Notes under the pieces: model-generated
Database searches by the model: none
Seen by the model: only the letters and a program-made list of their open reading frames with translations
Told to the model about the DNA's origin: nothing
Made by a program: the position numbers and the translations under genes
Source: Octopus sinensis
Lineage: Eukaryota
Reading direction: 5' to 3'
Length of the DNA stretch: 64,000 nt
Assembly: GCF_006345805.1 (NCBI RefSeq)
Contig: NW_021831041.1
Location: forward strand, 1 to 64,000
Shown: one piece after another, positions 609 through 63,510 of the stretch
Numbering within the stretch: position 1 is the first letter of the stretch
Layout of the letters: each line of letters opens with the position of its first letter

Positions 609-908
609 CTAGCTCGGCAGCTCGCTTCGCTCACCGCGACCTAGCTCCTGCGGAGGGCCTGTTTCATCAAACAACTATAAGTTTATGTAGATGTATAAAA
701 CTACCTGGTTTAATTTAACCCTATTCTATCGCCTGTTGATAAACGATGTTTGTCGTCCGTCCTTCCTTGGCATATATGAATAAATTTTCTCTTCTGCTTA
801 CCCTCGAGCATCCCACATACAGCTGTCCATGTGAAAAGCACTCACTCTCTAAAAATAACCCAACTACCTTTAATGACTGTCCCTGGGCCTTGTTTATTGT
901 CATTGCAC
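609..908 (-). mobile_element. Helitron 3' end with PIF1 helicase C-terminal remnant
   Basis: AMTINKAQGQSLKVVGLFLESECFSHGQLYVGCSRV (PIF1 C-terminal motifs); GC-rich subterminal segment, terminal CTAG at 609-612 followed by T on the minus strand. Confidence 0.9.
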
Positions 909-1337
909 ACTTTTTTTTCATTTTTTGTGGTTTATTTTTTTTATATTTAATTTTTTCATTTTTCCTTTGTAATTTCCTTTTTTTTCTTTTTTTGTTTTTT
1001 ACTGGCGGAAATGGGGCAGGGGGAGATGCGGCAGGCGGAAATGCGGCAGGCAAGAAAGCGACACACAAAAAAGCGACACACAAAAAAGATTTAATTAATT
1101 ACCTTATTAAGCTGACCGTTTTTTCTTCAGCTTCGTTTTTCCTCCTTCGGTTATCTATTTAAAAAATTATTTTTGAATAATAAAAAAGTTTAGGAAAAGA
1201 GGCATACCGAAAATAAATTCTATCTTTACGAAAAACTCAAGTAAATAGTTAATATTTTTACGCAAATTCTTCTGATTGCGCTGTCAATTGGTGGTAAATT
1301 GTGTTAATGGTTGTGCTAATGTGGTTTCAACTATCAA

Positions 1338-6329: not shown

Positions 6330-7127
6330 GTTAATTGTTTGGGATGAATGTACGATGGCTCATAAAGGCGCATTCAAGCAGTTGACCGAACATATAGAGA
6401 TATCAAGAATTGTAGCGACCATTTGTTTGGCGGAGCATTAGTTGTATTGGCAGGTGATTTTAGACAGACGCTGCCAATTATTCAAAGAGGGACGCCTGCG
6501 GATGAATTGAATGCCTGCCTCAAATCGTCATATTTGTGGACACACGTGAAAAAGGTAAGCTTAGATGTAAATGTACATGCACATTTACAAGGCGTTAATA
6601 GCATATTCCCACAAATCCTTCTAGATATTGGAAATGGGGCAATCACTTCAAAAATGCACGACCAGAAAATTAGGCTACCGGAAGAATTATGTATTTTCGT
6701 AGAAACAGCAGAAGAATTATTGAATGCCGTCTATTCCGAACTATCTGAACACTACGTGAATTTCGACTGGCTGCGTGAACGAGCTATATTAGCTCCACTT
6801 AATGATGAGGTACTTAATATAAATTTAGATTTATTAATGAAAATCCCTGGCAGAGAAAGAATATATAAATCGGTCGACGTTATTATGGACCATGAAAGGG
6901 CCTGCGATAGATTTAAGAGACTACAATTTCCGCTGAAGATAAGTTTTGCTATGACAATAAACAAGGCCCAGGGACAGTCTTTAAAGGTAGTAGGCTTATT
7001 TTTAGAGAACGAGTGCTTTTCACATGGCCAGCTGTATGTGGGGTGCTCAAGGGTAGGTAGAAGAGAAATTTATTTATATTTGCCAAGGATGGACAGACTG
7101 CAAACATCGTTTATCCACAGGCCTTAG
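6330..7127 (+). pseudogene. Helitron PIF1-family helicase fragment
   Basis: GDFRQTLP, RAILAPLN, FPLKISFAMTINKAQGQSL and FSHGQLYVGCSRV motifs; internally deleted, no Rep domain seen. Confidence 0.9.
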
Positions 7128-10778: not shown

Positions 10779-10904
10779 TACATTGAATAATGAATTTTCT
10801 AAAATATTCATTGTTTCTTTGATGTTATAATTAACAATTTCAGAATTACATCCATCATATAATTGAGAGTCATTTTCAGATCCATAAAATTCTAGTGATT
10901 CAGT

Positions 10905-11190
10905 GACCCGTGTATCCAAGCTCAATGGGATGCCATCTCATGTGAAGCTCTTGACGTACATCTACGCAAAAATTTCGATCAGCACAGACTTGCATGTCTC
11001 CGCGCAGGCTGCTGCACAGGGAGTGGGGCCTGGCTGGATGCTCTCCCTGTCCCTGCCACCGGTAACCTATTAGACAGAATACAAATGACCGGAGGGAGAC
11101 GAGCTGGCTTTTCCAGCGCATCTCGGTTGCAATTCTTCGCGGGAACTGCCTCTCTATCCGCAGTGCTTCGTCGTCGGACTAACCCTCAAG
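10905..11190 (+). mobile_element. CRE-clade non-LTR retroelement fragment
   Basis: QAQWDAISC..DQHRLACLRAG..GAWLDALPVPATGNLLD fused to the 3' QRISVAILRGNC motif. Confidence 0.75.
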
Positions 11191-12945
11191 TTCACGACAT
11201 TAATTCTCTATTAATTATATTGTACAATTAAAAAAAATTAAAAAACAATTTCTCAAAATTCATTTGTAATGGGAAAAAATTGTTTACAATTTTCTCCAAT
11301 AATATCCTTTACGATGTTCAAATTATTTTTATTGTTTTGACATGGAGGGAATTGTTCTACACGTCATATGTTATGAATGTGGATATAACCCCGAAAACAT
11401 ATATTCAATCTATTGAACTAAAGAAATTAAATATTGAAAAATGTATATAATCAATTTTTTAAGATTCTGAAATATTAAAGAAGAATCTAAAAAAACAAGG
11501 AATAGAGACGAAATGAATATTCAAGTTAGATTAAGGAAACTGATAGCCAATTGTAAGAATGAAAAGTTTTTTTAATCATACTTCAAAAGAACTCTACTCA
11601 GGCAGCAAGCTTCCTCACTAGCCACTGTTTTAACCTAACTATTTTACAGGGTAAAAAATTAATAAAAGTTAAATAAAAATTTTCTTTAATTTTCCACCTA
11701 GCCTTGTTCCTCGCACGTTTGCGAATGTCCTCAAGACTAAAAATAAGTAGATGGATGACTATTTGATGTAGTGCATTTAAATACAAAAAGCACAATACTG
11801 TTGCATCATTGGGAAACTACCATTGTATGGTAGTACTATGACATGTGCACAACATAACAAAAACCATACTAAAGCATGCTATATTCATGTTTAATTTAAA
11901 AATTATTAAATAATTTACATACAAATAAATATTATAATAAATTTTAAATCAATTTTCTATGATTTGTGAAGAGAAAGCAGCTGTTTTATAAATATGAAAT
12001 TTGAATATTTAATTTTCATTTTATAAATATACAAAAAAGTAAAAGAATTTTGAAAGAGACGTCGTTTGCTTGAGACTTGCTAGAAATAAAGAAATCGGAA
12101 GAAAAGTCAAGAAAACCGCCTTTTTAGCTGCAGCTTCCTATTAAAAATTTGCCAACAAAAACTTTACCAGAAAAGAGTTTTCAATCCACAGGAATTAAAA
12201 AACAGCCTTGAATTAAGTTCTAATAAAACCAATGATGTCAAATATTTCTCATTTATGAAGTTTGAAATAAAGCAGGCCTCTGTTTCTCTATTTTATTATC
12301 TTGGAAACAAAACAGATACTGATGATAAACGTGTAATTCTTCGAGTTTGATAATGGCTCTCACATTCTTTCAATCATTCGAACTAGTCTCTATTTCCATG
12401 CCGATTGAACGTGTACAAATCTCCACGATGAACAATAAAGAACCGTTAGTGCATCAATTACTGTGGAGTACAAAATTATCCTAAATACTTCCGGTTGGTT
12501 TTTCTAATGAATGGTTGATTTTTATTCTGGAAAATTTGATGTACCATATTCTCTCCACGCTATTTTTCATTCTTAAGGCTGGGATAAAGATATATTAATC
12601 TAATCACAACAATCCCTATAATGATGTTAATGCAGCAGGAAATGCAACTCTGACCAAATTTAAAGCACAATTATTATAAAGTGCTTTGGAATATCCAATA
12701 AAAATACGGCATTTGGAAAAATGCTGAAAAAATTATTGCAACAAACGGCCAATTTTGTGCATTTTAAAAATTGATGCAAAAAATGTCTATATTGCTTATC
12801 GCATTGTCAAAATTGAATGTTGATCAAATTTTTTGATTAAATGCTGTTTTACAATTTTTTCTTCACGATTCACTAAATAACAGAATATTCAGTTACAGTG
12901 TTAGATATCTATTGTTTTTTGAAATAAAATTATTTGTAAAAAATT

Positions 12946-13263
12946 ATGGGACTAAAAGAATCACAAAATTCAGAAAATCAATTTTCCGATGACAATAACT
13001 CTCCATTTCAAACACAAAACATGAATGAATCAGACGACTCTCTAAAGCCACTTGATTGGTTGAAGGACATGAAAACGTTTCCAGATATTACTCCCTTAGA
13101 TTTTGATGACAGCAACTCTCCGTTTCAAACACAAAACATGAATGAATCAGACGACTCTCTAAAGCCACTTGATTGGTTGAAGGACATGAAAACATTTTCA
13201 AATTTTACTTCTTTTATGGATACTTCTCCATCAGAAGAGAATCAAGACAGGTTCTCTCCTTAA
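12946..13263 (+). CDS. Hypothetical 105-aa acidic protein with a 39-aa internal duplication
   Basis: ORF contains a 117-bp tandem duplication (starts 12988 and 13105) that stays in frame; no family recognised. Confidence 0.35.
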   Translation: MGLKESQNSENQFSDDNNSPFQTQNMNESDDSLKPLDWLKDMKTFPDITPLDFDDSNSPFQTQNMNESDDSLKPLDWLKDMKTFSNFTSFMDTSPSEENQDRFSP

Positions 13264-13444
13264 ATGTCTTAAATACTAAAATACTAACACTACTAAAATA
13301 CTAACACTACTAACCATGTCTCTCTCGTTAATTAACAATAATGGAGCTGTTGAATTTTATTAGTTAAATCTGGTCCTCTATTACAGAATTGGAATGACAT
13401 TGTGAACAAAGTAAATAACTACAAGTTAATTAATAAAAGCTTCA

Positions 13445-13560
13445 TGGGCGGGAAGCCGACGCGATCGAGAAAAAGTTAGAGCGTACTATCGCGAGGGATA
13501 TCCGCTCAAAAAACCATCTCGATTTGCGGGCGTCGCCTGTGATAGCAGACATGCGGGAAT
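13445..13560 (-). mobile_element. CRE-clade retroelement 3'-end fragment
   Basis: Translates SRMSAITGDARKSRWFFERISLAIVRSNFFSIASASRP*. Confidence 0.7.
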
Positions 13561-13714
13561 AAAAAAGACGAAAATAATATTTTCCAAAGTCTTATAGCTG
13601 GATATATACATCTAGATTTTAGAAGGAAAGATTGTTTCTTACATTTTTACTAATTTTCAATCCAAGATATACTTTATCCCATATTTCAAAAGTTTTTGGT
13701 AGTGGATTTTTCAT

Positions 13715-14325
13715 TTATAGTGGGCTGTTATATTCCAAGATTTGATGACTGTGATGTCTTTTTCCAATAGAAACAGAGCTATTTTCACCAGAAATCGAAC
13801 TAAACGTTTCATGGAGCCTGCACTGTTCCATGAAAATGACAGGATTATTGTCTTTAACAGCGGCATGAAAATCTCTTTGACATCACTTGCAGTTGCAGGC
13901 ATGATGATTTTTATTCCGAAGATATCAACAAATAGGTTGTGCATGTATTGGGAATTATGTGTCTCTTGTCCTTAACCTCTTTCCATAATAAGACGAATAA
14001 CAAGTTGAAATTTAAGGTGTTCAGCAGAAATTTAGTTCCATTTCGCGGCGTTGTTAATGAGTTGATCACAGGCATGAACGAACAAAATTGACGTGGTGGG
14101 AACAAAGAATCGGTCGTATCCCTATTAAAGCTGTTCCAATAACAAAACCAGTAAACGAATTTTCTGACAGAGGCATATCCATCACACGCACACTGCCAAA
14201 CTGCTCTGCTAAACTACCTGACTTATAACTTGTTGCACCCTGACCTATAAAGTAGACACTAGAATCGGCTTCTAAGATTTCTTTGTGGCTTCTAAAATCG
14301 TATCGTTCTATTTCAACTCTCTCAT
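13715..14325 (-). pseudogene. Decayed bacterial-type 2-oxoacid/acetoin dehydrogenase E1 beta subunit (transketolase-like)
   Basis: Manual translation across frameshifts: MRELK*NDTILEAT/EILEADSSVYFIGQG..LAEQFGSVRVMDMPLSENSFTGFVIGTALIGIRPIL/ACDQLINNAAKWN*..LVIRLIMERG*GQETHNSQ..GIKIIMPATASDVK/AVKDNNPVIFME..LHE..SIGK/DITVI. No introns. Confidence 0.85.
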
Positions 14326-14332
14326 CAGGGCC

Positions 14333-14425
14333 TCACTCAGCGTATGTTTTTTCATCATCAAAATCGAAGATTGGGAATGCACTTTCTTTTGCAAAAGAAA
14401 AGTTATAGTCCATTTCAACATTTCA
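14333..14425 (-). pseudogene. C-terminal remnant of the bacterial-type E1 alpha subunit
   Basis: NVEMDYNFSFAKESAFPIFDFDDEKTYAE* resembles the E1-alpha C-terminus (FA.ES.FP); stop lies 7 nt upstream of the beta ATG, with GAGG overlapping it. Confidence 0.65.
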
Positions 14426-14845
14426 GCCCTCTTGGCTGAAGACTTGGACAGTCGTGAGTTCGATTCCGAAGGAGGCAGTTTTTCATCCTGGGTCAATTTT
14501 CGTTATCGTTCCCCTGCCCGTGAGGCAACGAGTACTTCTGGCACGACACAGTTGGAAATGGGGATCTCTTACCTTCCGGATTTAGCGTGGCGTTATGGAG
14601 TCCACCATGTCAGTTGGAAAATTCCATTCGGATATGGCAACGCTCAGGAGGCACTTAATGCCTACCGAAAAAGAACTTCTAGATCTCTGGCCCTGGGACA
14701 TCGTCGTCTCTGTCCGATCATTGTGAGCAGGATTGAACCTTTCAGAAGGATCTCCCTCGCTTGATTTGGGGATCACGGGGGATTATAATCAACTGGCTTA
14801 CCCTGGTCCTTTGGTCAATAAAATGTGTTAAATGTGTTAAAAGAG
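14425..14845 (+). mobile_element. Candidate tRNA-derived SINE
   Basis: A-box-like TGGCTGAAG, B-box GTTCGATTCC at ~14458, GC-richer ~350 bp body, AATAAA and an (AAATGTGTT)2 tail. Confidence 0.45.
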
Positions 14846-15099
14846 ATATTTGATTCCATCGTTTCCAAGGCTTGCGTTGTTAGAGTTTGATCTTTGAAAA
14901 CTTTTTTTTTGATAAAGTATGATGGGGGCAGCGCTCTTTCCGGGTTGTAACTTCGTTTTTTACTACATTTTTTTTGGTAATTGCGTCTTGCTTGTAGGAG
15001 AGCGTAACAATTATTTTTACAAAAAAAGTTTTTAGGGACGAAGTTCAGCGTTTCTGGGAGAAGAACACTTTGCAGTTGAAACAAATATCCAAACAAACC

Positions 15100-15225
15100 T
15101 GCCTACAGGCCTCTTAAAGACCATCCAAGATACGACTCCATTCACTTTAAACTTTTTGGGGACGAAGCCCAGCACTCACTGCTGATCGCCTGATGACAGC
15201 CGGCCTCATACAAGCTAGAGAAGTC
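15100..15225 (-). mobile_element. LINE reverse-transcriptase C-terminal fragment
   Basis: LYEAG...CWASSPKSLK*MESYLGWSLR resembles the post-RT motif of APE-type LINEs. Confidence 0.35.
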
Positions 15226-15449
15226 GTGGTAACTAACTAACTAACTAATTGGAGTGATGGGGGAGCATTCCTAAGATCTATATTGAATGGTGCGGCAAAA
15301 ATTTTCATTGCCTGAAAAATTTTATTAAAATTTTTAAAATGCACTTAATTTTAATAAATCTTAGAACTTTTTTCAAATTTAACAATAATGTGACTAATAA
15401 TGATAGTATATTTTTCTAATGAATCTTTAGCTTTATTTTCGCTTAAAAA

Positions 15450-15960
15450 GTAAAATGAACCGTATTTTGGGAATTATTTGATCTCTCGAAAGTTTTAATT
15501 TTGATATAAAAGAAGCAATAGATTCACAGAGTTGATGGCAAAATGGTACTTTTGTAGTAGTCTACAGCCACTTTTTAGCGAGTTTCAAAATAATACCATA
15601 AAATTCAATTTCTATTCAAGCAAATATATCTTTTGAGGCAGGCGGAACGACTCAACATGAAACAGTGGTATGATAAAGCACATCACTATGGACTGTCAAT
15701 TTCCACTAATATTTTTTGAATCTCCTATGATTGAGAGATTTGCCACGTATCCAATTCACAATAGACAACACCGTATTTATTACATTTTGCATTGACTTTG
15801 CGATTATATTCTCCTGATGAATGAGACAATGTTGCCAAAATATAGCATCAAGATTTATTTCGAAATCTCAATTCTGAAAAAAGTCCATAAAACCGTTTAT
15901 TAGATCAATCATATTAACCCCTCCATCAATACAAATGGTCCTTGCTACTTTAATTGAGAG
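15450..15960 (-). mobile_element. hAT (GTF2IRD2/ZBED-like) transposase relic
   Basis: ICIDGGVNM..HCLIHQENIIAKS..VLSIVNWIRGKSLNHRRF..DVLYHT motifs. Confidence 0.75.
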
Positions 15961-16722
15961 AATTTCCTGGGGTTTCATGTAAAAAAACTTAAAAAACCCT
16001 AACTTAATTATGATTAAAATAATTCTCGGGTTCGAGTCTGAACGCTGCTTATCCGATGAAAGATTCTATACATCTGAGATGCTAAAAAACTTGACGAGTA
16101 GGCCGTTATTAGTGAAGACTCATTGCAGAACTGGATCGTCTATCTTGGACCCAAACACAAAAAACAGATAAAGATAATTTCCTGGCTCTACCTACAATCA
16201 GTTAACCTTGAGCCTACCTAGTTAAAAAATTAACTCTACTTTAAAATACAGTTACTGTCCTGCCTTTGCGGAGCTATAGAATACTATGTTATAATGTTGT
16301 TATAAGAAAAATTAGAAGGGTTCCTATTTTTATTTGCTTTTCAACTAAATGTATATCAACTAATGTACTAATGTTTTCGCATAAATGTATTATAGCACGG
16401 TGAAATGGGATAAACGCTGAGTTTTTTGTTGCTGAATGAATACTTATATTGTAGTTATAGACAACTAAATAAAGACTCGTAGACCATTCGTGATTTTCTT
16501 TTACAACCAGTCTTTTTTGTTACCAACGCATTAACGTTTGGTTGCACTTTTTAATTTGACCCTGTGATTGATGGTGCCTTGGCCGACTAAACTTTGCATG
16601 GTACAGAGGCGTATATCTTTGTTTTTATTTTTATTATTCTTATTTCTTAAACGTATTTTTATATAAGTTTATAATAATTTGATTTATAATAAAAAAAATT
16701 CTGGCAGTTTCTCTTGCCAACA

Positions 16723-19561
16723 ATGAATGTTAATTTGTCTGACTTTGAGTTCGAAACTATTCCTAAAACATTAAAGGTTTTTTAAAATATTTTCATATAA
16801 AATGTAGTCTGAAGAGGAGCTTCAAAGTCTATCAGTCCCTGAGGATGTTTCAGAAATAGAAAAATCAATTCTCTTGTTAAGGTTTTTATATATTTTGTTA
16901 TCAACATTTTGCTGAGCTTATTTAAGTATATTTTTAAAAGTTTAGTAGGAATATGTTAGAAGAAATAGATTATAAATAATTTCCTAAGCAACAAAAATAA
17001 TATTTTATCAATTTTATCGAGCAAAAAAGACTCTTAATCAATTTGATTCAAAAATATATTTAATGTAGTAATGGACTACAAGTACAAAAATTATGCGCAA
17101 TCGGCAACATACCGAAATTGGTCAAGTCACACTACAATGAATGCGTTTCTAAAATTATTCCACTTCTCATCGTAATTTGTGATGTGGCATTATTTAGGAC
17201 TTGATTAATGACTTTCCGTTTCCTCTCCACACATCTTTGTGCAACAGTTTTGTACTAATAGCAGAGGATATCTCTTTTGAGGAATACGACCAGCATTTTT
17301 TGCCTGTTGTTCTGAAAGGTGTTTCTAATGAAGTTGATGGTGGACATTTTCGATTATATTCTAGATATTTCTAAAACGTGGTTTGAAGGACTAATTCGAG
17401 TGACTCCTTATTTGACCCAAGACACTGTGATGTGCCAAATAATGCCTCTTTCAATACAAAATGCAATTATTTCCAAGTCAGTGGGAAGTAGGATTCTCAG
17501 TTGTCGACTAATCACTCCTATGTTAAATAAAATTAGAAACAAGACGTGTCATGTATGTTTTCAAATCTTAGGATGGTTGAAAAAATGTTTCGTCTAGTCA
17601 AAGATCTATGTCAAGATATTGACTACGACGTACGAGCTGCAATGTGTGGAGAATTACGTCACATATCGCGGTACATAAAATGTGCTATTAGAGTAGAATT
17701 GGTGGCCAGAACACAGCCATGTCAATAGTTCCAGAACTCCTGGAATTGTTGAAAGACGATTCTATTATTGTCAAATCGGCTGCAGTGGAAACGTTGGCTT
17801 GCATCTTGCCGATTCTAGACACCGGTAATGTACCGACATCTCCTCATTAAGTTTGTCAGAAGTCAAGAAAGGATACATTTCCATGATTATAAAACTGTTC
17901 CAAGAATCTTACAACAAATGCGAAGACACACTTCAAGTGATTGCTCGACAGTTTTCATTATTCCTCGACAATTTTAAACGTTTGATGAGAATTAAATGTC
18001 ATGTCTCAGGAGACATCACTGACCATCAAATGCGTTGGTTCGTTGAGTATTTTGCCAACCTTTGTTTTCTCGATGATAAAAATGATGTTCTATTTTTTAT
18101 TTATTATAGGAAATATTTCTTCTAAAAATTTCAAAATCGCTGAACCTTAACTGCAAACTGGGCTTTGCAATGAATTTTGGAGTATAACTGGATTTGTTTT
18201 TTGCTTAGAAAGTTTTACAAATTGCAGGGGTTGCTTTATTCCATTCACATCTCCACATCTGTCTTAAAACGCTCGTGAAAGATTCTGAACTTGAACTTAA
18301 AAAAACAGTCGCAAAAACTTTTTTGGAGGTTATTTAGTTCTGAATAAAGATGATAGATCATGTTGGGTTTGGGTTTGAGTGTTTACTGTGTCCAGCCTCA
18401 ATTTGTAGAGCTATGTAAAAATGTCAAACTTGAGGTTTTTTTTAGCAACATGATTAGGTTATTTGTGAGATAATTCCCAATCTGGGTGAAATAGTCACTT
18501 TGTTCTTAAATATCCCAAAAGGGCACAAGGAAAGTAAAAATATAACCGTACTTCTTTCTAATAATCCACTAGTGTGAGTATATCAACGAATTTATAAAAA
18601 TCTTTCAAGAAATAGAGGCCCTTTTGATTAATACATACGAATGGCATCTTCACGTAAAATTTGTCGAACAGTTTAAAAAGTGTTGGAAATTACTTCCATC
18701 GAACGTAATTTACCAAAAATTTGTTCCCTCTATTTGGAGACATCTTAAAAGCTCGGTGACTTAAAAATTTTTGTTTATATCATAGCTTCCATTACCGGTC
18801 ATTGATTCGTATGTTTCGCTGATTATTATGATTATTCGGTATACAAAGCCAAAGCAGAAACAACAGGAATTTCTGCAAAAAATATTCAATGGTTTTTAGT
18901 GGCTTATTTGACATTTAGAATTCTGTTTCAATCAAAATTGTTATTTTCGGATTATATTCATTGATGTTGCAAAAAACTCGTTTGAACTAAATTCCAGGAG
19001 GTTCAACAAAATTCACTTTGTCTCTCATCTGATTGACATGATCAATGACCCCGTCCCCATTGTGCGACTGAGTCTCTGTTCGGTCATCATGCAATGTCGC
19101 CGGTGCATAAAACCACAAGACATCGACGAGTTGAAAAAATTGAAAATATCACTGAGACACGCTGCGATCACAGAGCAGGATAGTGAGGTCTTGAATGAGT
19201 GGATAAAAGTATTAGGACAAATAAAACTTTATAGATAATTAAAGAAATTGATTGCTACGATATATCGAATGTGCACGTAGCGTTTGTTTTTTATTTCATA
19301 GAGCAAATCTTTTGGCATAATAACGGACGAGGATCTCGATGATCTTACGAAAGAAAACGAAGAACTAGAACTTGAAGATGTATGGGCCTCTGGTTTATGT
19401 TTAGAATGTGGAACGCCCGAATGCTACCCCAGTTTCTACAAATAAAGGTTAGATGTTCGTGGTAAGTAATCAATAGCTAAAATAAGTACAAAATCTACTT
19501 CAGCTAAAAAAAAGTATCAATCTAATTTATATATTTTAGGAAATTTCCATCTAAAAAATAA
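16723..19561 (+). CDS. PPP4R4: Serine/threonine-protein phosphatase 4 regulatory subunit 4 (HEAT repeats), multi-exon
   Basis: LKSEEELQSLSVPEDVSEIEKSILLL and LVKDLCQDIDYDVRAAMCGEL match remembered PP4R4 segments; also VPELLELLKDD..IVKSAAVETL and DMINDPVPIVRLSLC; many short introns; end coordinate approximate. Confidence 0.85.
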
Positions 19562-23700: not shown

Positions 23701-23774
23701 TTTTTATGAGCTGTCACGAAATTGGTGACTTGTCGAAAGCCAGTTCCTAAAGTTTCTAGACAAGAGAAGGAAAT

Positions 23775-24966
23775 TTTTTTTTTTTAATTAAGTTAATTTA
23801 TACAAACAAGACAAAAATTACAGATAGCTAAGTTAGTTAAAGGCCTCACGAGACACCCGACCAGCCGCGCGAATGGCGAAGACGTTCCCTCGGATCACAG
23901 CAATCGACAGACGTTCCAGGAGCCAAGAAAACTCTCTTGGATCGTGACTAGTCCTTGAAATATGTTGACCGAGCGAGCGAAGGAAGCGGAGTGTCTTGGG
24001 ACCGAAGATCCCGGAGGACTCCAAGGCAATTGGAGTAAAGAGGAGCGAGTTGGACAGGTGGCCGTACTTGAGAATCTTTCGCTCCTCGGCCTGCCTGGAA
24101 GCGTGACCAGGATTGGCGGCGGACAGCGCGAGATTTCCCAGCGAGAACGTGTCCGAGCAGGTAGAATCCCAAATAAGGGATTTCCCCTGCTCGTAGGGGA
24201 AGGTGGACATGCCGTCAGGGCGTTTGCCATCCCCTCTATCCAATCCAACAGGTTCAAGGATAGACGGGATGCCTGCTGAGGCGAGGGCTCTCTGTACGAC
24301 TGAGTTGAGTTCACTGTGACGGGGGGCACGACCGGCACTCCGCCGGCAAGCGAGGGGATGCAAACCGTACTCGTCAACAGTTCCGCCACAACGGCATTTG
24401 TGCGACTGGCAGATTTTCAGCCCGACACGGAGGGAGATTGCAATTCTTAGGCATTCCTTGTCCAACAGGTTCCCGATGGAAGGGAGAGGGAGAGCCTTTA
24501 ACCAGACACCGCTGCTTTCACAGCGACCTGCACGGAGGCAAGCGACACGGTGTTGATTGGAGACAGGAAGCAGGCCTTCGAAGATTGCCTGACAAGAGAT
24601 TTCGTCCCATTGGCGCTGTACAGATTGAGAGTTGGGCAGCTTCGAACCAAACCGAGCCTCCCACCGACCACGGGCTGCAGAGTAAACTTCAGACAATTTC
24701 CGTTCGGGGAGGTTTCTAAGAACGATGTCTGAGAGAGTACGAGAAGCGTGATGAGCGGATAGGAATGCCGGGAGGGCAAGATCGGAATAGGATCTCAAGC
24801 CAAGGCCACCCCAGCGCACAGGCAGGGATGCCTGAGTCCAGCCTGGATCGTCGAAAGCCAGATTGCAAAGAGAGCTCGTACCGAGCCTGAGGATATTGTG
24901 AAGGTCGGAAAGAAGGTCGCCTCTTTGAAAGCAGGGTGCACATCTTAGGGTGTAAAGGATCTTAGG
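23775..24966 (-). mobile_element. 5'-truncated CRE-clade retroelement with poly(A) tail and 12-bp TSD
   Basis: Intact 383-aa ORF with zinc-knuckle region (CRCGGTVDEYGLHPLAC), RPDG/WD/ES..K..KY RLE motifs and ERLSIAVIRGN; TSD AGAGAAGGAAAT at 23763-23774 and 24967-24978; T-run at 23775-23785. Confidence 0.92.
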
Positions 24967-25799: not shown

Positions 25800-26680
25800 T
25801 AGTGAGAAAAAACAAGCTCGATCTGCAGCATTGCCAGAGAACATCCTCGAGCGATAATGTGGGAGACGTTTTTCAGAAATTTTGATTTTTGCAAGCCGAA
25901 GGCTCCGGAGGTTTCGAATATCGGAAGGACAGAGAAATGTTGAGGGGCAATTTGATTGCACTTTTCCGTTATGTTGACTTCGCCAAAACCGCAGCCGATC
26001 CAGGAGAAGATGCGGATGGGGACTAAATTGTATTCGTAGCATCCCAGATGTGGCATTTGCCATTACGGAAAAAGAAGGTTCCCATCCTATTTAGAGGCTT
26101 GCCGTCCCCCCTGTCCAGACCGGCTAGTTCGAGTAAATTCAAGAAACCGGCAACATTGAGTGCTCACGAGATGACGTCGTTGAGTGCCCCGTGACGAGGC
26201 GTGCGGCCTGTTCTCGGGAGCTTCCACATTCACCATACCTTCCCATCGGCAACAACAGGGCGTACAGATATCAATACCCAACCGAAGAGCAACTCGAATT
26301 CGGAGATTCTCGTCATCCAATAACTAGCCCGTTGATGGCGTCTGGGAGACGTCGAGTCAGGAGTCACTGTGTTTGTGAACTGCAGAAAGCAAGCACGCCA
26401 GGCGATGTTGGTCCAGTAGCGGCTGTAGCATGGAAAAGGAGTGTGCTGCCCAGATCTCGTCCTAAATACTCTGTCTGGACATCTCAGAAGGAATTGGGAG
26501 GTTGACTATGGTCCGAAATTCCTGCAGGTCGTCGGCCGGTAGATCCAGAGAGAGTTCGTTTAAAAAGGCTACATGCAGGAAGCGCAAACGTATCAGCTGT
26601 AAAAATACCAGCGCGACAGAAAAATCAGAAAAACTAAAACTTAATGATGAACTCGGAAGAACCATCTACAACAACTAGGT
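25800..26680 (-). mobile_element. Degenerate CRE-clade retroelement
   Basis: DQHRLACL, LLDDENLRIRVALRLGIDIC, IWDAT, PGSAAVLA and FETSGAFG motifs. Confidence 0.8.
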
Positions 26681-30959: not shown

Positions 30960-32940
30960 TAAATCGTTATATTTATTAAAAATATGGAAAGCTAAATTAA
31001 TCAGAAATTAATCGGCCAGCAAGCCGGATGGAACAGCTGTTCCCACGCACAACGGCCAACAGGATCCTTTGGATTAGGAATGTAAATTCCCTAGGATCCT
31101 TGGAGCGTAAAGAACAGAGGTGGCCAAGTTTCTTTAGATGATCAACTGTCTTTGTGCCAAAGACGCACGAAGTCTCAACAATTGGCCAAAACCAAAAGCC
31201 GTCTAACAAGCCCTGGTATTTTACGGATTTTGTATGTTCAGCCCTATTAGCACGGGACCCGGGCAGAGAGGCGGATTCGTTGATGGCCGACTTAGAGAAG
31301 GAATCAACACACGTGGCGTCCCAAACTAGTGGTTTACCAGTGTCGAAAGCGAACAACGTCGAGCCATCAGGCCTTTTTCCATCACCACGGTCAAGACCAA
31401 TTGGCTCAAGGACAGAAGGATACCCTGCCTTTTCGAGGGGATGGTGAATGATCTTGTTAAGAGCCGAATGACGAGGTATGCGACCTGCGCTTTTCTTGCA
31501 GGAAAGGGCATGGAGCCCGTATGTGTCCATCGTTGATCCACACCGGCAGGGGTGGGGATTACAAATCGGTAGTCCCAGACGAAGGCATATTCCAAAACGG
31601 AGGGCATCAGAGTCTAGGCAGGTATCCAAATGGGTCGTGGGAAGGCAGTTAAGCCAGGAGTCAGAATACGGTTGGCGACTGGCACGGAAGCAAGCTAGTC
31701 TGTGCTGGTCCAAGAGACGCTCCAACGAGACAACGTAATATTCACAAATAATTTTGTCCCATTCACGTTGGAGAGATCGTTCTGACGGTAAGACGAAATG
31801 CTTTTCCTTCCAAAGCAAGAGTGCAGAATTGATATCAGAGTCCAAAGTTGATTCGGGTGATTTTTCAAGAATCTTATGGACAAGAAGATACAATCTGAAG
31901 AAGATGAAAGGAAAGCGGGAAGAGAAAGGTCGAGCGCGGAGCGAAGCCCCAGACCGCCAGAGGATACAGGAAGTTTGGCCTGACACCAACCAACGTCATC
32001 AAACTTGACATTAAAAATCTTCTCAGCGGAAGAACGCACCAGAGCGTCGAAAGAATCCAAGGCAATAGGAATAGAAAAGCAGCGGGAACTCCTTAGGACA
32101 TAATTGATTTTCGGGATCAGAAGATAATTTTTGAGAATGAAATAAGCAGGGTGGGGATCAATATCTGCAAGTTTATCACAAAGGAAAGAAAGGGCATTCC
32201 TCTTGGAATTAAGAATACGAATGGCGGATTGGTCGTAGATCGGAGCACCCAAGATTTCGAGATCAGCAGTGAAAGTATGTCTCAGATCGGGCAAAAGGCC
32301 TCGAAACTGAGAAAAAATGTTTTGAATACTAACACGATCGATGTTAACATTTACGATTTCAGATTTGAGAGAATTAATTTCGAGACCAATGGATGACAAA
32401 GCTGGGATTAGAGATTCCAAGTCCTTTATCAAAATATCGGGCGGACCACCAATAGTACAATCATCCAAATACCAAATATTCAGAGGCGACAAATTCTTAC
32501 GGGCAATAAAAGGAAATAAAGGAATCACCTGCAGTCAAAAGGCTCGGGTATCCATATAAAAGAAAAACAAATGGCAGCAATGAAGGAACTCTGTCTTTAC
32601 AAACCTCAAGTAGATGCTCTCTGTTGAGAGAATTGAACGCATTTTAACATCCAATTTTAGCAGTAGCCGGGGCTTTTCAGAGAGGTGAGTCGAATCAATA
32701 AAACACCGGGATGCGTGGACCGCGGCCTCGCAACCGCCAGGCACGCCAACGCCCAACTGAATGGGCTGGAGTTCGTCACTAATAGACGGAATTACCAGTT
32801 TGCACCCGACTTTTGCAAACAAACGGCGGAAAACATTTCCGACGGCACCTTTTATATTGTTGCGAATACTAATTCGAATAATGTCAGCTTTTTGTTTTGC
32901 TTGAATGGCCATGTTCTGAAATTGTTGATCTTAGAAACAA
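30960..32940 (-). mobile_element. CRE-clade retroelement, RT plus RLE, frameshifted and internally deleted
   Basis: LQPIQLGVGVPGGCEAAVH, LLKLDVK, WYLDDCTIGG, KLPVSSGGLGLR, RPDG and QRILLAVVRGN. Confidence 0.92.
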
Positions 32941-34105: not shown

Positions 34106-34417
34106 AGTTTCTATCCTGCAAATATGAGAACAACCCTTCTGATCGGGGAGAGTTATTCCCATATTTCAGCCACGTAGATGACGACGATACGTCAATGTGC
34201 GTTGAATATGCCATTAAGTGAATTTTATTTTATCAGTAATATTTTGAAAAATTTTCCGAACTATTTGATTGCTAAACAGAAAATTCAGGTCTAAAAAATT
34301 AAATCTACAGGATTGCTATAGAACAATACTGGTTGATAAAAACACATGGCCGGAAAAAATGTTTTCACCACAGGCCTGGATAACGGTGGGCGAAACGTTG
34401 AGGGACCAGAGTTAAAA

Positions 34418-34490
34418 CGACCATGCTGGGACTCGAACCCAGAATCTCCCGATCCGTAGTCGGGTGCGTTATCCATTGCGCCACACGGCC
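34418..34490 (-). tRNA. tRNA-Arg (ACG)
   Basis: GGCCGTGTGGCGCAATGGATAACGCACCCGACTACGGATCGGGAGATTCTGGGTTCGAGTCCCAGCATGGTCG; 73 nt, full cloverleaf, anticodon loop CT-ACG-GA. Confidence 0.96.
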
Positions 34491-34599
34491 GTTTGTTGGG
34501 CCAATGATTCCTTATTAAATATTTCTAAATTATCTGGTATTTCATGAATTACTGTGTTAATTCTACAAATTCTTTAATATCAATTTATACATGATATTA

Positions 34600-35500
34600 A
34601 ATTAATTAAGATCGATTAATCGAAGGAAAGGCCAGCAGCCTGGCGGATTGCCAAACTGTTTCCCCGGATAACGGCGATCGAGAACAGTTGCATTAGCCAG
34701 TCCACCTCCCGAGGATCGTGAGTGCGCATTGAGATTTTGGCTCCAAGCTTGCGGAGGAACTTTTCAGTCTTTGAACCAAGAGCACCCGACGTCTCCGCTG
34801 CTATCGGCACCACGAAAAACTCCTCCGAAAGAGCAGAATATTTGGATAGCTTTAAATCTTCAGCCTTTTTAGCAGCAGATTTAGCCTCCAGAGCACATGA
34901 AATTAAATGTGAAGCAGAAAAAGTGTCCCAGCAGGTTGCATCCGATACGAGACCTTTTCCGCCTTCAAAAAGGAAAAGGGTCATCCGTCAGGACGTATGA
35001 TGTCATTCATAGCAAAGTGCCTCGGAAAACGTCCGGCACTCCACCTGCACAATAAAGAATGCAGACCAAAAGAGTCAACAGTGCAGCCACAACGACAAAC
35101 GTGAGAGACACATTGCCTTACCCCGAGAGAGATTCCGATCCTTATTAATTCATCGTTGAGGAGAGTCCGTTCGGGAATGCACAAAGCCAAGCTCAACTAG
35201 CTGGGGATGCTGCCGAAAGAAGGCAAGCGCGGCGGTGCTGGTTGGACTACTCGAGCAGCAGATTGAAAGTTTGCTTGCATCTAATTCGATCCCAGGCTCG
35301 TTGAGACATTCGATTTTCTGGAAAGTCAAGACCTTGTTCCCTCCAGACTTCGCTGAAATGCGTCACATTTGTGTCCAAGGAAAATTCAGAAAAAGAGCGT
35401 AGAATTTCCATGACAAGTGTGTGGCTCGATTTTTCATCACCCCGAAAGATACCAACCGGTTACAGGATAGACGGGAATCCCGCGGAATTAAAAGCCCTTC
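34600..35500 (-). mobile_element. CRE-clade retroelement 3' fragment(s)
   Basis: LHSLLCRWSAGRFPRH, VSDATCWDTFS, LKLSKY, IAAETSG, QLFSIAVIRGNS; extra AGFPSIL*PVG piece at ~35460-35490. Confidence 0.85.
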
Positions 35501-35907
35501 TAATCACTTTATTCTTATAAATTATTGAATCTCTTACAATGTAGGTCACTCTTTTCTTCGAAGAATGAATTTTTGTAAATCAATTAACATTCCACAGACA
35601 CTTGGTTTTAAGAAAGACATTAGAGAGCATAAAATATCTCATTTTAAATTAAACGAAAAATGCAGTGAATGACGGCAAGATTTTATAATTTCAAGAAACG
35701 TGATAATTCGAAAAGGGCAAATAATGAGAAATCGTTTAAAAGAACAAACTTGTCTAAACTCGAGCAGAAGTGCATAATCGAGGAAATATAATTAATTGTT
35801 TGATTTTTACTGTTCGATATTTTAATAATATTCTTGCAATACACGTTGATTTTGATGTCACGTTGAACAAAAAATTAAATTTAAAATCAATTTGTTGGAC
35901 AATTTAC

Positions 35908-41845: not shown

Positions 41846-42229
41846 CTATTTTTTAAATATGGTTTAATATATTCGGATGATCTATTTCTCTGGTTATTAA
41901 AAATTGCAAGTCTAGAGTGCCGTTATGTGGTCCATCAAGTCAGTTGGATCTTTTATTTTATATGGATTTTGAAACTTTCAGGGGACACTTAATGCCCACC
42001 AAAAAAGGACCATTAGCATTCATTTTTCCGAGACATTCTAGCACAATGCACTTTCGTACGATGGATCTTTCCAAGAGGAAATCCTTAGAAGTGGAAAACA
42101 CTTTACTGCTATCCTGCTAAACATAAATGAAATTAAAGGGAATATCATAGAACTGCGCTCACTACTGACAAACCTGAAAAGTAATGTGGCTATGAGACCA
42201 AACTATTTCCTATTTTCACATTCCCTGAT

Positions 42230-43830: not shown

Positions 43831-44519
43831 CAACGATCTACGAAGTGTGGGAGTGAGGTCTGCAGACAGGGAGTCCAAGGCGATTGCAGATACCCAAAGG
43901 GAGTGAATCCCCATCAAGGACAGTATCCAAAAGCGGAGAAGAGAGTACATTCAGCCAGAAGCCTGAGTATGGGTGACAGGCGGAACGGAAACAAGCCAAT
44001 CTGTGTTGGTCGAGGAGTGCGAGGCCCGAATTAATATCAGTCCAACGATGATTCAGTGATTTTTTTAAAAATTATAATGAATTTCATAAAATGCTTCTTT
44101 TAAACCTTCATCTTTTGTGAAAATTTTCATTGAATCCGAACCTGATGAATTTCAAGCTCAATCACAACAAAATGCGTTATTACGATGTTAGTCGAATTGT
44201 GGTTGCTGAGTTTTATGTTTTTCTTAAGAATTGTATGTTTATATTCTTCTCAGTTGGTTTCGGTACAAATTTGTTTATTTCATGTTTATTCCCCATTCGA
44301 TCCGTTATACGTCAGGACGGGGAGAACAAACGTGTTATAGATCTTTAGTTTTGTGTTTGTATTTAGCTTTCTTAGACACCAGAGCGATTGATTCATGTTT
44401 CTACGAGTGACATCTTCAGAGTCACCCAGCAGTGATCCAACTTTTGTATACTTTCTCAAGAGTTCTAAGTACGCTTAACTCGAAAAATAACTTTCTCACT
44501 TTTGGTATCTAATAGCCTG

Positions 44520-61894: not shown

Positions 61895-63510
61895 CAGGGG
61901 TTCTCAACCTTTTTAGCTCAAGGGCCAAATCGATAATTAAAATTAGCTTCGCGGGCCGCACAAAAAATATTTTATATATTTTTATATTTTTCATTTTACT
62001 AAATATTGATTTGCATAAATATGTAGATTCATATATCCATTGTGTGTTATATTTTTGAATTTTTCTTGAGGAATCGCACCATGCTTTGCCAATCCCGAGA
62101 GTCTTTCCAGATTCGACCATGCTCTTAGGACTTGCCTCGAATCAATATGTAATGCACCATTCGACGATCTTGGCTGGGAACAGGCAATACTCCCTATCAG
62201 TCATGGCGGCATCGGTGCGCGCTCAGCCACTGACCTTTCTTTGCCAGCATTCCTTTCTTCCACACATGCCACGAGCACCCGCCGCAAAAAGCCGCTGGCT
62301 TGGGTTGTCTTTTGAGCTCCCTCAGAATCCGCACGCACAGGTCGAATGGGACAGGATCCTCTGCGACCAGAAGCTGAACAGCTCAAGCCTAAGCTTAACC
62401 AACATCGCTTGACTTGCTTATTGGCTGCCTCACAACCATATTCGGGGGCTTGGTTGACCGCTATCCCAATGGGTTCTATTGGAACTTTATTGGACGATGA
62501 TTGCCTGAGGATCGGCACATCACTGCGCCTAGGACTGAACGTATGCCGGGAACACCGGTGTCGCTGTGGATCGACCGTTGACCCCTTTGGATTGCACCCG
62601 TTATCGTGCTAAAGAAGTTCCGGACGCTTCCCTCGACATACTGCTCTGAACGACATAGTCAAGCGGACTCTGGAAACGGCCGGATTCCCTTCACAGCTGG
62701 AACCGGTCGGGCTGGCTCGGGAGGATGGTAAACGTCCTGATGGTCTAACGACCTTCCCATTTGAAAATGGCAAGTCTCTCATCTGGTACGCTACTTGCAC
62801 GGATACCTTCTCCGCCAGGAACATCTTGACGTCAGCCTCAGAGCCGGGCTCTGCAGCCAACCTGGCCGAAACGCTAAAAATCAAGAAATACAGTGCATTA
62901 TCTCACCGCCATATCTTTGCCCCGATCGCAGTGGAGACATCGGGAGTCCTCGTCCCCAGAACTAAAAAATTCCTTATTAAACTGGGGGATTTGGCAAGCA
63001 GAAGAAGAAATGATCATCGGGAACGGACATGGCTTTTCCAACGCATATCAATAGCCATCTTGCGTGGGAATTGCCATTCCATCTTATCCTCTGCTGCTAA
63101 TTAAATACTAAATAACAGATCTATGGCCACTGCGACTATCAGTTTGATTTGAGGAATTAATTCGTAAAAATTAATAATGGATGCATTTTTTAGCAATGCT
63201 GCCAGTTCTATATCATGTTGTAAATTAATGAGTTCTAGTTGAAACTTTGCAGACGCATCCTTAATTTCCACGCTGAATGGAGTTGCGAATATTTTCATTA
63301 AAGGAAGGAATTCTTTAAAATTCTAAAAATTAAATTTATATTAATGTACCCCAAAACGTGTTTCAAATTGATTAATGAAATCACCAATTATGGATATGTT
63401 TAACCTTAAGAATGAATAATTAAATTTAAACATTATTAAAAAATTACAAAAGTTAGTTCCTCTAGAGGGGCCGCAAAAAAAATCCTGGGGGCCACATTTG
63501 AGATCCGCTG
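61895..63510 (-). mobile_element. Non-autonomous hAT Buster element with 8-bp TSD, interrupted by a CRE insertion
   Basis: Termini CAGGGGTTCTCAACC and TTTGAGATCCGCTG; TSD GTCTAGAG at 61887-61894 and 63511-63518; relics QLELINLQ and ESTYLCKSIFSKMK. Confidence 0.9.
62075..63148 (+). mobile_element. 5'-truncated CRE-clade retroelement with 9-bp TSD
   Basis: CRCGSTVDPFGLHPLSC, RPDG, IAVETSG, FQRISIAILRGNC; TSD TTGAGGAAT at 62066-62074 and 63149-63157. Confidence 0.92.

Follow-up and report, generated by a model that had tools for sequence, protein, structure and literature searches.

A decayed fragment of a bacterial E1-alpha/E1-beta operon, probably of chlamydial origin, in a transposon-rich stretch of Octopus sinensis DNA

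Results

A broken operon on the minus strand

The minus strand between positions 13727 and 15056 of the window (the whole 64-kb stretch of Octopus sinensis DNA analysed here) carries a non-functional copy of a bacterial E1-alpha/E1-beta operon of the thiamine-dependent 2-oxoacid dehydrogenase-like type. Its parts, together with the repeat that splits it and the nearest retrotransposon fragment, are as follows, with donor coordinates referring to the metagenomic contig L001.

14957-15056, minus strand: E1-alpha piece A, residues ~152-192; L001 9482-9604, blastn 69% over 123 nt, E 2e-9
14841-14958, minus strand: E1-alpha piece B, residues ~255-294; L001 9789-9907, blastn 88.4% over 121 nt, E 1e-38
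14418-14840, plus strand: inserted dispersed host repeat, SINE-like, 423 bp; donor collinearity interrupted between 9907 and 9909
14333-14417, minus strand: E1-alpha C-terminal tail, residues 295-321, reading EMDYNFSFAKESAFPIFDFDDEKTYAE (14416-14336), with the original TGA stop at 14335-14333
14326-14332, minus strand: intergenic spacer GGCCCTG, 7 nt, identical in L001
13727-14325, minus strand: E1-beta relic, residues 1 to ~213 of 356, Transket_pyr domain only
13448-13576, minus strand: LINE 3'-terminal coding fragment, located 150 nt beyond the 3' end of the relic and in the same orientation

Translation of the minus strand from 14520 to 13550 in three frames gives E1-beta-like stretches interrupted by stops and frame changes, with the motifs HACDQLINNAAKWN*ISAEHLKFQLVIRLIMERG*GQETHNSQ. 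The original prediction had recognised E1-beta motifs in a decayed frame, and all of its sequence statements were found on this strand; the tryptophan that it had guessed in RG(W)GQ is a TGG codon in the donor and TAA in the relic. The stitched E1-beta peptide matches the Pfam family Transket_pyr (PF02779) with an E value of 4.8e-16, and the domain is also detectable in the raw frame. The coding region starts at ATG 14325-14323, giving a protein that begins MRELK, and its homology ends at donor residue ~213; neither the flank nor the 64-kb window as a whole gave a match to the Transketolase_C part of E1-beta. At the DNA level, window positions 14417-13764 align with L001 9909-10578 (85.8% identity over 671 nt, blastn) and positions 13762-13727 with L001 10603-10638 (83%, blastn). 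The reading 'MDYNFSF...', considered as an alternative E1-beta start, was rejected on comparison with the donor contig, which shows an E1-alpha tail and a genuine TGA stop.

The original prediction had placed here an operon junction and E1-beta, both of which are present, but the relic is larger than it had proposed, E1-alpha going on at 14841-14958 and 14957-15056. About a third of the E1-alpha gene remains (~110 of 321 residues, compared with ~213 of 356 for E1-beta), detected by tblastn with the donor E1-alpha at E values of 5e-9 and 7e-7 and with 88% identity in DNA; the C-terminal tail accounts for the stronger match, with 81% identity over 27 residues (E 5e-9). Piece A is heavily decayed and contains several indels, yet is collinear with the other pieces, its tblastn alignment setting ETLNF..VPKNFFCKNNCYAL opposite ETLNFAALKKLPFLFVCENNRYAV. 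Between pieces A and B approximately 185 nt of the donor (L001 9605-9788) have been deleted. The relic as a whole corresponds to L001 9482-10638, covering E1-alpha from residue ~152 to its end at 321 and E1-beta from residue 1 to ~213; ~1.16 kb of donor sequence is represented in ~1.3 kb of the window.

The relic is isolated. A six-frame scan of 12300-17285 gave no Pfam match to E1_dh, with Transket_pyr the sole domain found there. In Smith-Waterman alignments with the donor operon and the genes around it, the flanks did not outscore shuffled sequences, and no donor homology was seen past either end of the relic. Tblastn with 258 ORF segments from nine chlamydial loci found only the relic within the 64-kb window, and the GC-rich patches in the flanks matched none of the chlamydial loci by tblastx and blastn. 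No further bacterial genes were found in the 64-kb window. At the right-hand border a 25-nt direct repeat (15025-15049 and 15149-15173, 84% identity) scores higher than any of 300 shuffled sequences. One of its copies belongs to the E1-alpha relic, the other to the right flank at a distance of 124 nt, and the pair could represent a small duplication or microhomology at the border of the insert.

The operon junction

The two reading frames are joined as they would be in a bacterium: between the E1-alpha stop codon TGA and the E1-beta ATG lies the 7-nt spacer GGCCCTG, and a GAGG sequence, predicted to be the ribosome-binding site, overlaps the E1-alpha stop. The original prediction of a stop codon 7 nt upstream with an overlapping GAGG is exact to the base. 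The entire 33-nt junction GCTGAGTGAGGCCCTGATGAGAGAGTTGAAATA, comprising stop, GAGG, spacer and start, is identical in the window and in L001. Seven of the seven other chlamydial loci compared also have E1-alpha directly upstream of E1-beta, each with a different junction sequence, indicating that the junction found in the octopus is specific to this donor lineage.

Relatives of the relic and the donor contig

Searches of 5.8 billion proteins with the stitched peptide gave as best match a 356-residue protein, P0001 (67% identity, E 6.5e-66, 240 bits), followed by matches at 51-56% and then a long series at 40-47%. An E value of this order in a database of this size, together with 86% DNA identity over 671 nt, excludes a chance resemblance. 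The named relatives among the matches listed are almost all Chlamydiae (Chlamydiia, Simkaniaceae, Simkania sp. and Neptunochlamydia), and none of the 120 matches listed is encoded by an animal. P0001 is encoded on L001, a 28-kb metagenomic contig (ENA ERZ27256796, JGI 3300017991, Logan SRR6963352), to which the relic DNA is 86-88% identical; other chlamydial genomes reach only 65-69%. Papers that mention the JGI sample identifiers give no description of the sample.

The gene order on L001 is topoisomerase I with a SWIB domain, an autotransporter, Wzy_C, a GT4 glycosyltransferase, a 196-residue protein without a family, E1_dh, 7 nt, P0001 and ABC-2 transporter genes. The fusion of topoisomerase I with SWIB is typical of chlamydiae. 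Both E1 genes are intact, encoding 321 and 356 residues. L001 E1-alpha scores 286 bits against the NCBIfam PDH equivalog, below its cut-off of 394, so the donor enzyme is to be described as PDH-like and not as a proven PDH; E1-beta scores 326 bits against an NCBIfam subfamily with a cut-off of 321. The genes alongside suggest a role for the donor enzyme in glycan synthesis, and the association with polysaccharide clusters made in the original prediction fits the donor operon, which adjoins the Wzy_C, GT4 and ABC-2 genes. The 196-residue protein (L001 8441-9031) has no Pfam or NCBIfam match and its gene overlaps the start of E1-alpha by 4 nt, for which reason it is probably co-translated with the E1 pair.

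In a neighbour-joining tree of 44 sequences with 100 bootstraps, the relic is sister to P0001 in 100 of 100 replicates. The terminal branch of P0001 is almost zero whereas that of the relic is long, and the two fall in a clade with Simkania sp. Pac_F2b and metagenomic proteins, inside a larger chlamydial group. Both the blast searches and the tree thus place the relic inside a bacterial clade, bearing out the bacterial origin first proposed for it, and on their evidence the donor was a Simkaniaceae-like member of the Chlamydiae. The nearest named genome to the donor, Simkania sp. Pac_F2b, belongs to a symbiont of coral tissue (PMC11809670), showing that this clade does live inside marine invertebrates.

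Decay of the copy

Three premature stop codons interrupt the E1-beta relic, TAG at 14310-14308 (TAC>TAG at E1-beta codon 6), TAA at 14034-14032 and TAA at 13974-13972, the latter two derived from TAC and TGG in the donor. There are also four frameshifting indels (-1 near 14281, +1 near 14083, -1 near 13870 and -23 at 13763) and in-frame deletions of 12 and 3 nt near 14230; the full series of relic indels relative to the donor is -3, +1, +1, -1, -12, -3, +1, -1 and -23 nt. The E1-beta relic is a pseudogene derived from its family (PDH-E1-beta-like, NF006667) and not a working member of it. Some of the 1-nt indels could be assembly errors if the assembly was made from noisy long reads, but the substitutions and stops could not.

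Relic and donor differ at 93 of 799 aligned coding positions. These differences are distributed 35/23/35 over codon positions 1, 2 and 3, which is not different from uniform (chi-square p = 0.21), and dN is 0.121, dS 0.144 and omega 0.84 (Nei-Gojobori). When the 52 amino-acid differences between the relic and P0001 were polarised with nine outgroup proteins, 46 were assigned to the relic side and 2 to the P0001 side, with 4 left unresolved. The changes from donor to relic are dominated by G>A (24) and C>T (20), the reverse changes A>G and T>C numbering only 4 and 8, and 44 of the 93 changes are transitions from G/C; GC content, 43.4% in the donor, has dropped to 37.9% in the relic, towards the 32-38% of the surrounding DNA. 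CpG-driven decay was not detected, C>T and G>A being no commoner at donor CpG sites than elsewhere (Fisher p = 1.0). By its omega, its flat codon-position spectrum and its drift towards A+T, the relic has evolved neutrally under the host regime after its transfer. The decay asserted by the original prediction is thus real, in the form of three stops, four frameshifts, internal deletions and an omega of 0.84.

A host repeat inside the relic

The E1-alpha relic is split by a plus-strand insert of 423 bp, at which donor collinearity breaks at a single base. Two diverged copies of the insert occur elsewhere in the window (nhmmer; 41910-42086, plus strand, E 6e-12, and 42910-42778, minus strand, E 6e-11). 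The single-base break and these two relatives identify the insert as a dispersed repeat of the host, acquired later than the bacterial DNA. It has a B-box-like sequence, GAGTTCGATTCC, near its 5' end and a tail composed of AATAAA and (ATGTGTTA)x2, and its longest ORF found only four weak, uninformative matches among 1.84 billion protein representatives. No tRNA head was recognised in it, either as an Rfam tRNA match at E <= 10 or as an ARAGORN call, and no target-site duplication was found around it; its status as a SINE is for these reasons only probable. The SINE-like element noted previously to the right of the relic is therefore present as a dispersed repeat, but it is inserted into the relic and does not flank it. 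Exactly at the left junction of relic and insert there is an 8-nt tandem, CATTTCAA CATTTCAG (14411-14426), the second copy of which restores the donor base absent from the first.

The surrounding host sequence

On the 3' side of the relic, a GC-rich patch at 13448-13576 (minus strand) encodes the last ~40 residues of a non-LTR retrotransposon of the RT/REL-endonuclease type, as shown by tblastn with seven full-length relatives of the LINE ORFs in the window (E 1e-5 to 9e-7, residues ~840-900). The 'CRE fragment' reported earlier on this side was right in kind, this being the C-terminus of an RT/REL-endonuclease LINE; the clade name may differ from CRE, as Dong-R4 is the abundant LINE of this type in the O. 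vulgaris repeat annotation (PMC13282606). The same LINE group is represented by eight copies or fragments in the 64-kb window (10902-11161, 13448-13576, 23863-24966, 25847-26503, 31036-32846, 34619-35513, 43853-44011 and 62076-63101). The copy at 23774-24966 is 98.7% identical to the Octopus sinensis contig VCDQ01011229.1, and its ORF is 99% identical to O. sinensis LOC115227578; it carries an open frame of 383 residues which, with the 98.7% identity, suggests recent LINE activity. An intact tRNA-Arg(ACG) gene (34417-34491, minus strand, 58.5 bits) lies ~125 nt 3' of the LINE copy at 34619-35513 (minus strand).

Exon-sized ORFs in the window match F-actin capping protein beta, a DHDPS-like protein, a deaminase and PIF1, and a PRUNE-like exon has only 36% identity to sea anemone proteins and is misleading as to the host, which the LINE ORF shows to be an octopus. 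Taken together, the matches assign the host to the O. sinensis/vulgaris group or a close relative of it. Two ORFs, 721-1083 (minus strand) and 6423-7127 (plus strand), share the C-terminal motif AMTINKAQGQSLKVVGLFLE.ECFSHGQLYVGCSRV; the second matches the Pfam PIF1-like helicase family, and both look like the remains of Helitron or PIF1-type transposons. To the left of the LINE fragment a 112-nt segment is present as a tandem duplicate (12981-13092 and 13100-13209, 92% identity) with an open plus-strand frame reading SPFQTQNMNESDDSLKPLDWLKDMKTF..., and may be a repeated host exon. Exact look-ups of five ORFs from the window, three of them spanning relic junctions, found no record elsewhere. 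Within this one assembly the relic is continuous with host sequence that includes mobile elements, and it almost certainly lies inside an octopus chromosome.

Discussion

The explanation that best accounts for these observations, and which we consider very probable, is that the locus is a dead nuclear insertion: a piece of a Simkaniaceae-like E1-alpha/E1-beta operon that entered the octopus germ line, integrated in a transposon-rich region and decayed neutrally. An intracellular chlamydia would have infected the octopus germ line, and DNA from lysed bacteria may then have been joined at a chromosome break by end-joining. The piece would have begun midway through E1-alpha, crossed the operon junction and ended midway through E1-beta. 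Incomplete from the outset or soon afterwards, and lacking a eukaryotic promoter or introns, it would subsequently have evolved as junk DNA, acquiring A/T-biased substitutions, stops and small indels, a deletion of ~185 nt and the insertion of a host SINE-like element. The relic almost certainly has no present function.

It is conceivable that the piece was duplicated to this site from a larger, or still functional, chlamydial transfer at another octopus locus, and is itself only a broken secondary copy. In other animals, long stretches of inserted bacterial DNA have often been broken up and duplicated, as with transfers from Wolbachia. We think this unlikely here, given that the 120 protein matches listed include no animal-encoded relative and the 64 kb contain no other piece of the donor.

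A second alternative, which concerns the mechanism of entry only and not the bacterial origin, is that a LINE reverse transcriptase switched template onto a polycistronic chlamydial mRNA in the host cytoplasm, giving a chimeric retro-insertion comparable to U6-L1 chimeras. Such a switch is conceivable because the 3' fragment of a LINE follows the relic in the same orientation; the order E1-alpha/E1-beta, 150 nt, LINE C-terminus and tail is the one expected, and the relic, truncated at both ends and crossing a cistron boundary, resembles a piece of operon mRNA. Against this, relic and LINE fragment are set apart by 150 nt of AT-rich sequence assigned to neither, and no direct repeat of at least 8 nt flanks the composite of the two (no shared 8-mer). 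LINE fragments are also so dense, with eight in 64 kb, that adjacency and matching orientation are quite likely to arise by chance, and entry by this route seems to us decidedly improbable.

The chlamydia-like bacteria known to inhabit the tissues of marine invertebrates (PMC11809670) could in principle have contributed a contaminating read that was mis-joined into the octopus scaffold. A living bacterium's gene would not show three stops, four frameshifts, a 185-nt deletion and an omega of 0.84, however, nor would it be interrupted by a repeat of which the same animal window contains two further copies, and the piece is only 1.3 kb long with no further bacterial gene on either side. Contamination or a chimeric assembly is on these grounds very unlikely, and the original argument for integration is upheld by the host repeat inside the relic, the LINE fragment 150 nt away and the decay. 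Lastly, derivation from the animal's own mitochondrial PDHB or BCKDHB, as a processed or duplicated pseudogene, to which the common Transket_pyr domain and the place of PDH E1-beta chains as best matches among solved structures might point, deserves virtually no credence, as the best matches are bacterial (240 bits for the chlamydial P0001 against 69 for human PDHB and 47 for BCKDHB, in keeping with the sequence differences from both proteins remarked on at the outset) and as an E1-alpha tail, a bacterial stop-spacer-start and 86% identity to bacterial DNA are impossible from a eukaryotic mRNA.

The age of the nuclear insertion can be estimated roughly. The Jukes-Cantor (JC) distance between relic and donor is 0.126, and on the repeat clock of O. 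vulgaris a distance of 0.09 corresponds to 25 My and 0.12 to 33 My (PMC13282606). By this clock the transfer would have occurred roughly 35 My ago or less, the figure being an upper bound because changes on the bacterial side are included in the distance. At such an age the relic may also be present in O. bimaculoides, which split off 13-33 My ago. On the chlamydial side very little seems to have altered since the transfer, in that dS exceeds dN by only about 0.02 and there are 2 changes on the P0001 side as against 46 on that of the relic, while the octopus copy has changed by 12%. So static a donor beside a relic changed by 12% is not what would be expected if the evolution of bacteria is faster than that of their hosts. 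Chlamydial evolution may be slow, the mutation rate of the host may be locally high (with 44 of the 93 changes being transitions from G/C), or the transfer may be younger than the clock implies. A more far-reaching reading, that there was an ancient germ-line association between octopus and chlamydia, that a nearly unchanged descendant of the donor is alive, and that this is the first chlamydia-to-cephalopod transfer, perhaps by way of operon mRNA copied by a LINE, is speculative and on balance unlikely.

The closest parallels to the relic are the nuclear Wolbachia transfers ('nuwts') of insects and nematodes, in which DNA of an intracellular bacterium likewise resides in the host nuclear genome, mostly non-functional, decaying neutrally and invaded by host transposons. 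The relic differs from these in having as its donor a Simkaniaceae-like chlamydia, not an alphaproteobacterium, and as its host a cephalopod mollusc, and in that only one 1.3-kb piece is seen. NUMTs too are organelle or endosymbiont DNA captured at chromosome breaks and then decaying, whereas the source of the relic is a free-standing bacterial lineage that is still almost unchanged in the environment. The E1 pair on L001 shares with the relic its gene order and the stop-GGCCCTG-start arrangement, but is intact where the relic has stops and frameshifts. PDHB (PDB 6cer_B, 1ni4_B) and BCKDHB (1dtw_B) belong to the same superfamily and share the Transket_pyr fold region, but unlike the relic they are not encoded beside E1-alpha with a bacterial spacer.

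Wolbachia and a few other germ-line symbionts of arthropods and nematodes have left well-documented DNA fossils in animal chromosomes. To our knowledge very little has been documented for molluscs or for Chlamydiae, and full-text literature searches combining octopus or cephalopods with chlamydiae or gene transfer gave nothing relevant. Both the donor phylum Chlamydiae and a cephalopod host thus appear to be new for bacterium-to-animal nuclear transfer.

Since the relic is almost certainly functionless, its value is historical and methodological, not physiological. With an unusually clean three-way comparison of donor, relic and outgroups, the neutral mutation spectrum of an octopus genome can be read directly. 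If verified, the insertion would mean that the germ line of the octopus had been accessible to a chlamydia-like bacterium. It would also provide a datable marker, at about 35 My or less, of an association between chlamydiae and octopuses, and would indicate a living relative of the donor for which octopus tissues can be screened.
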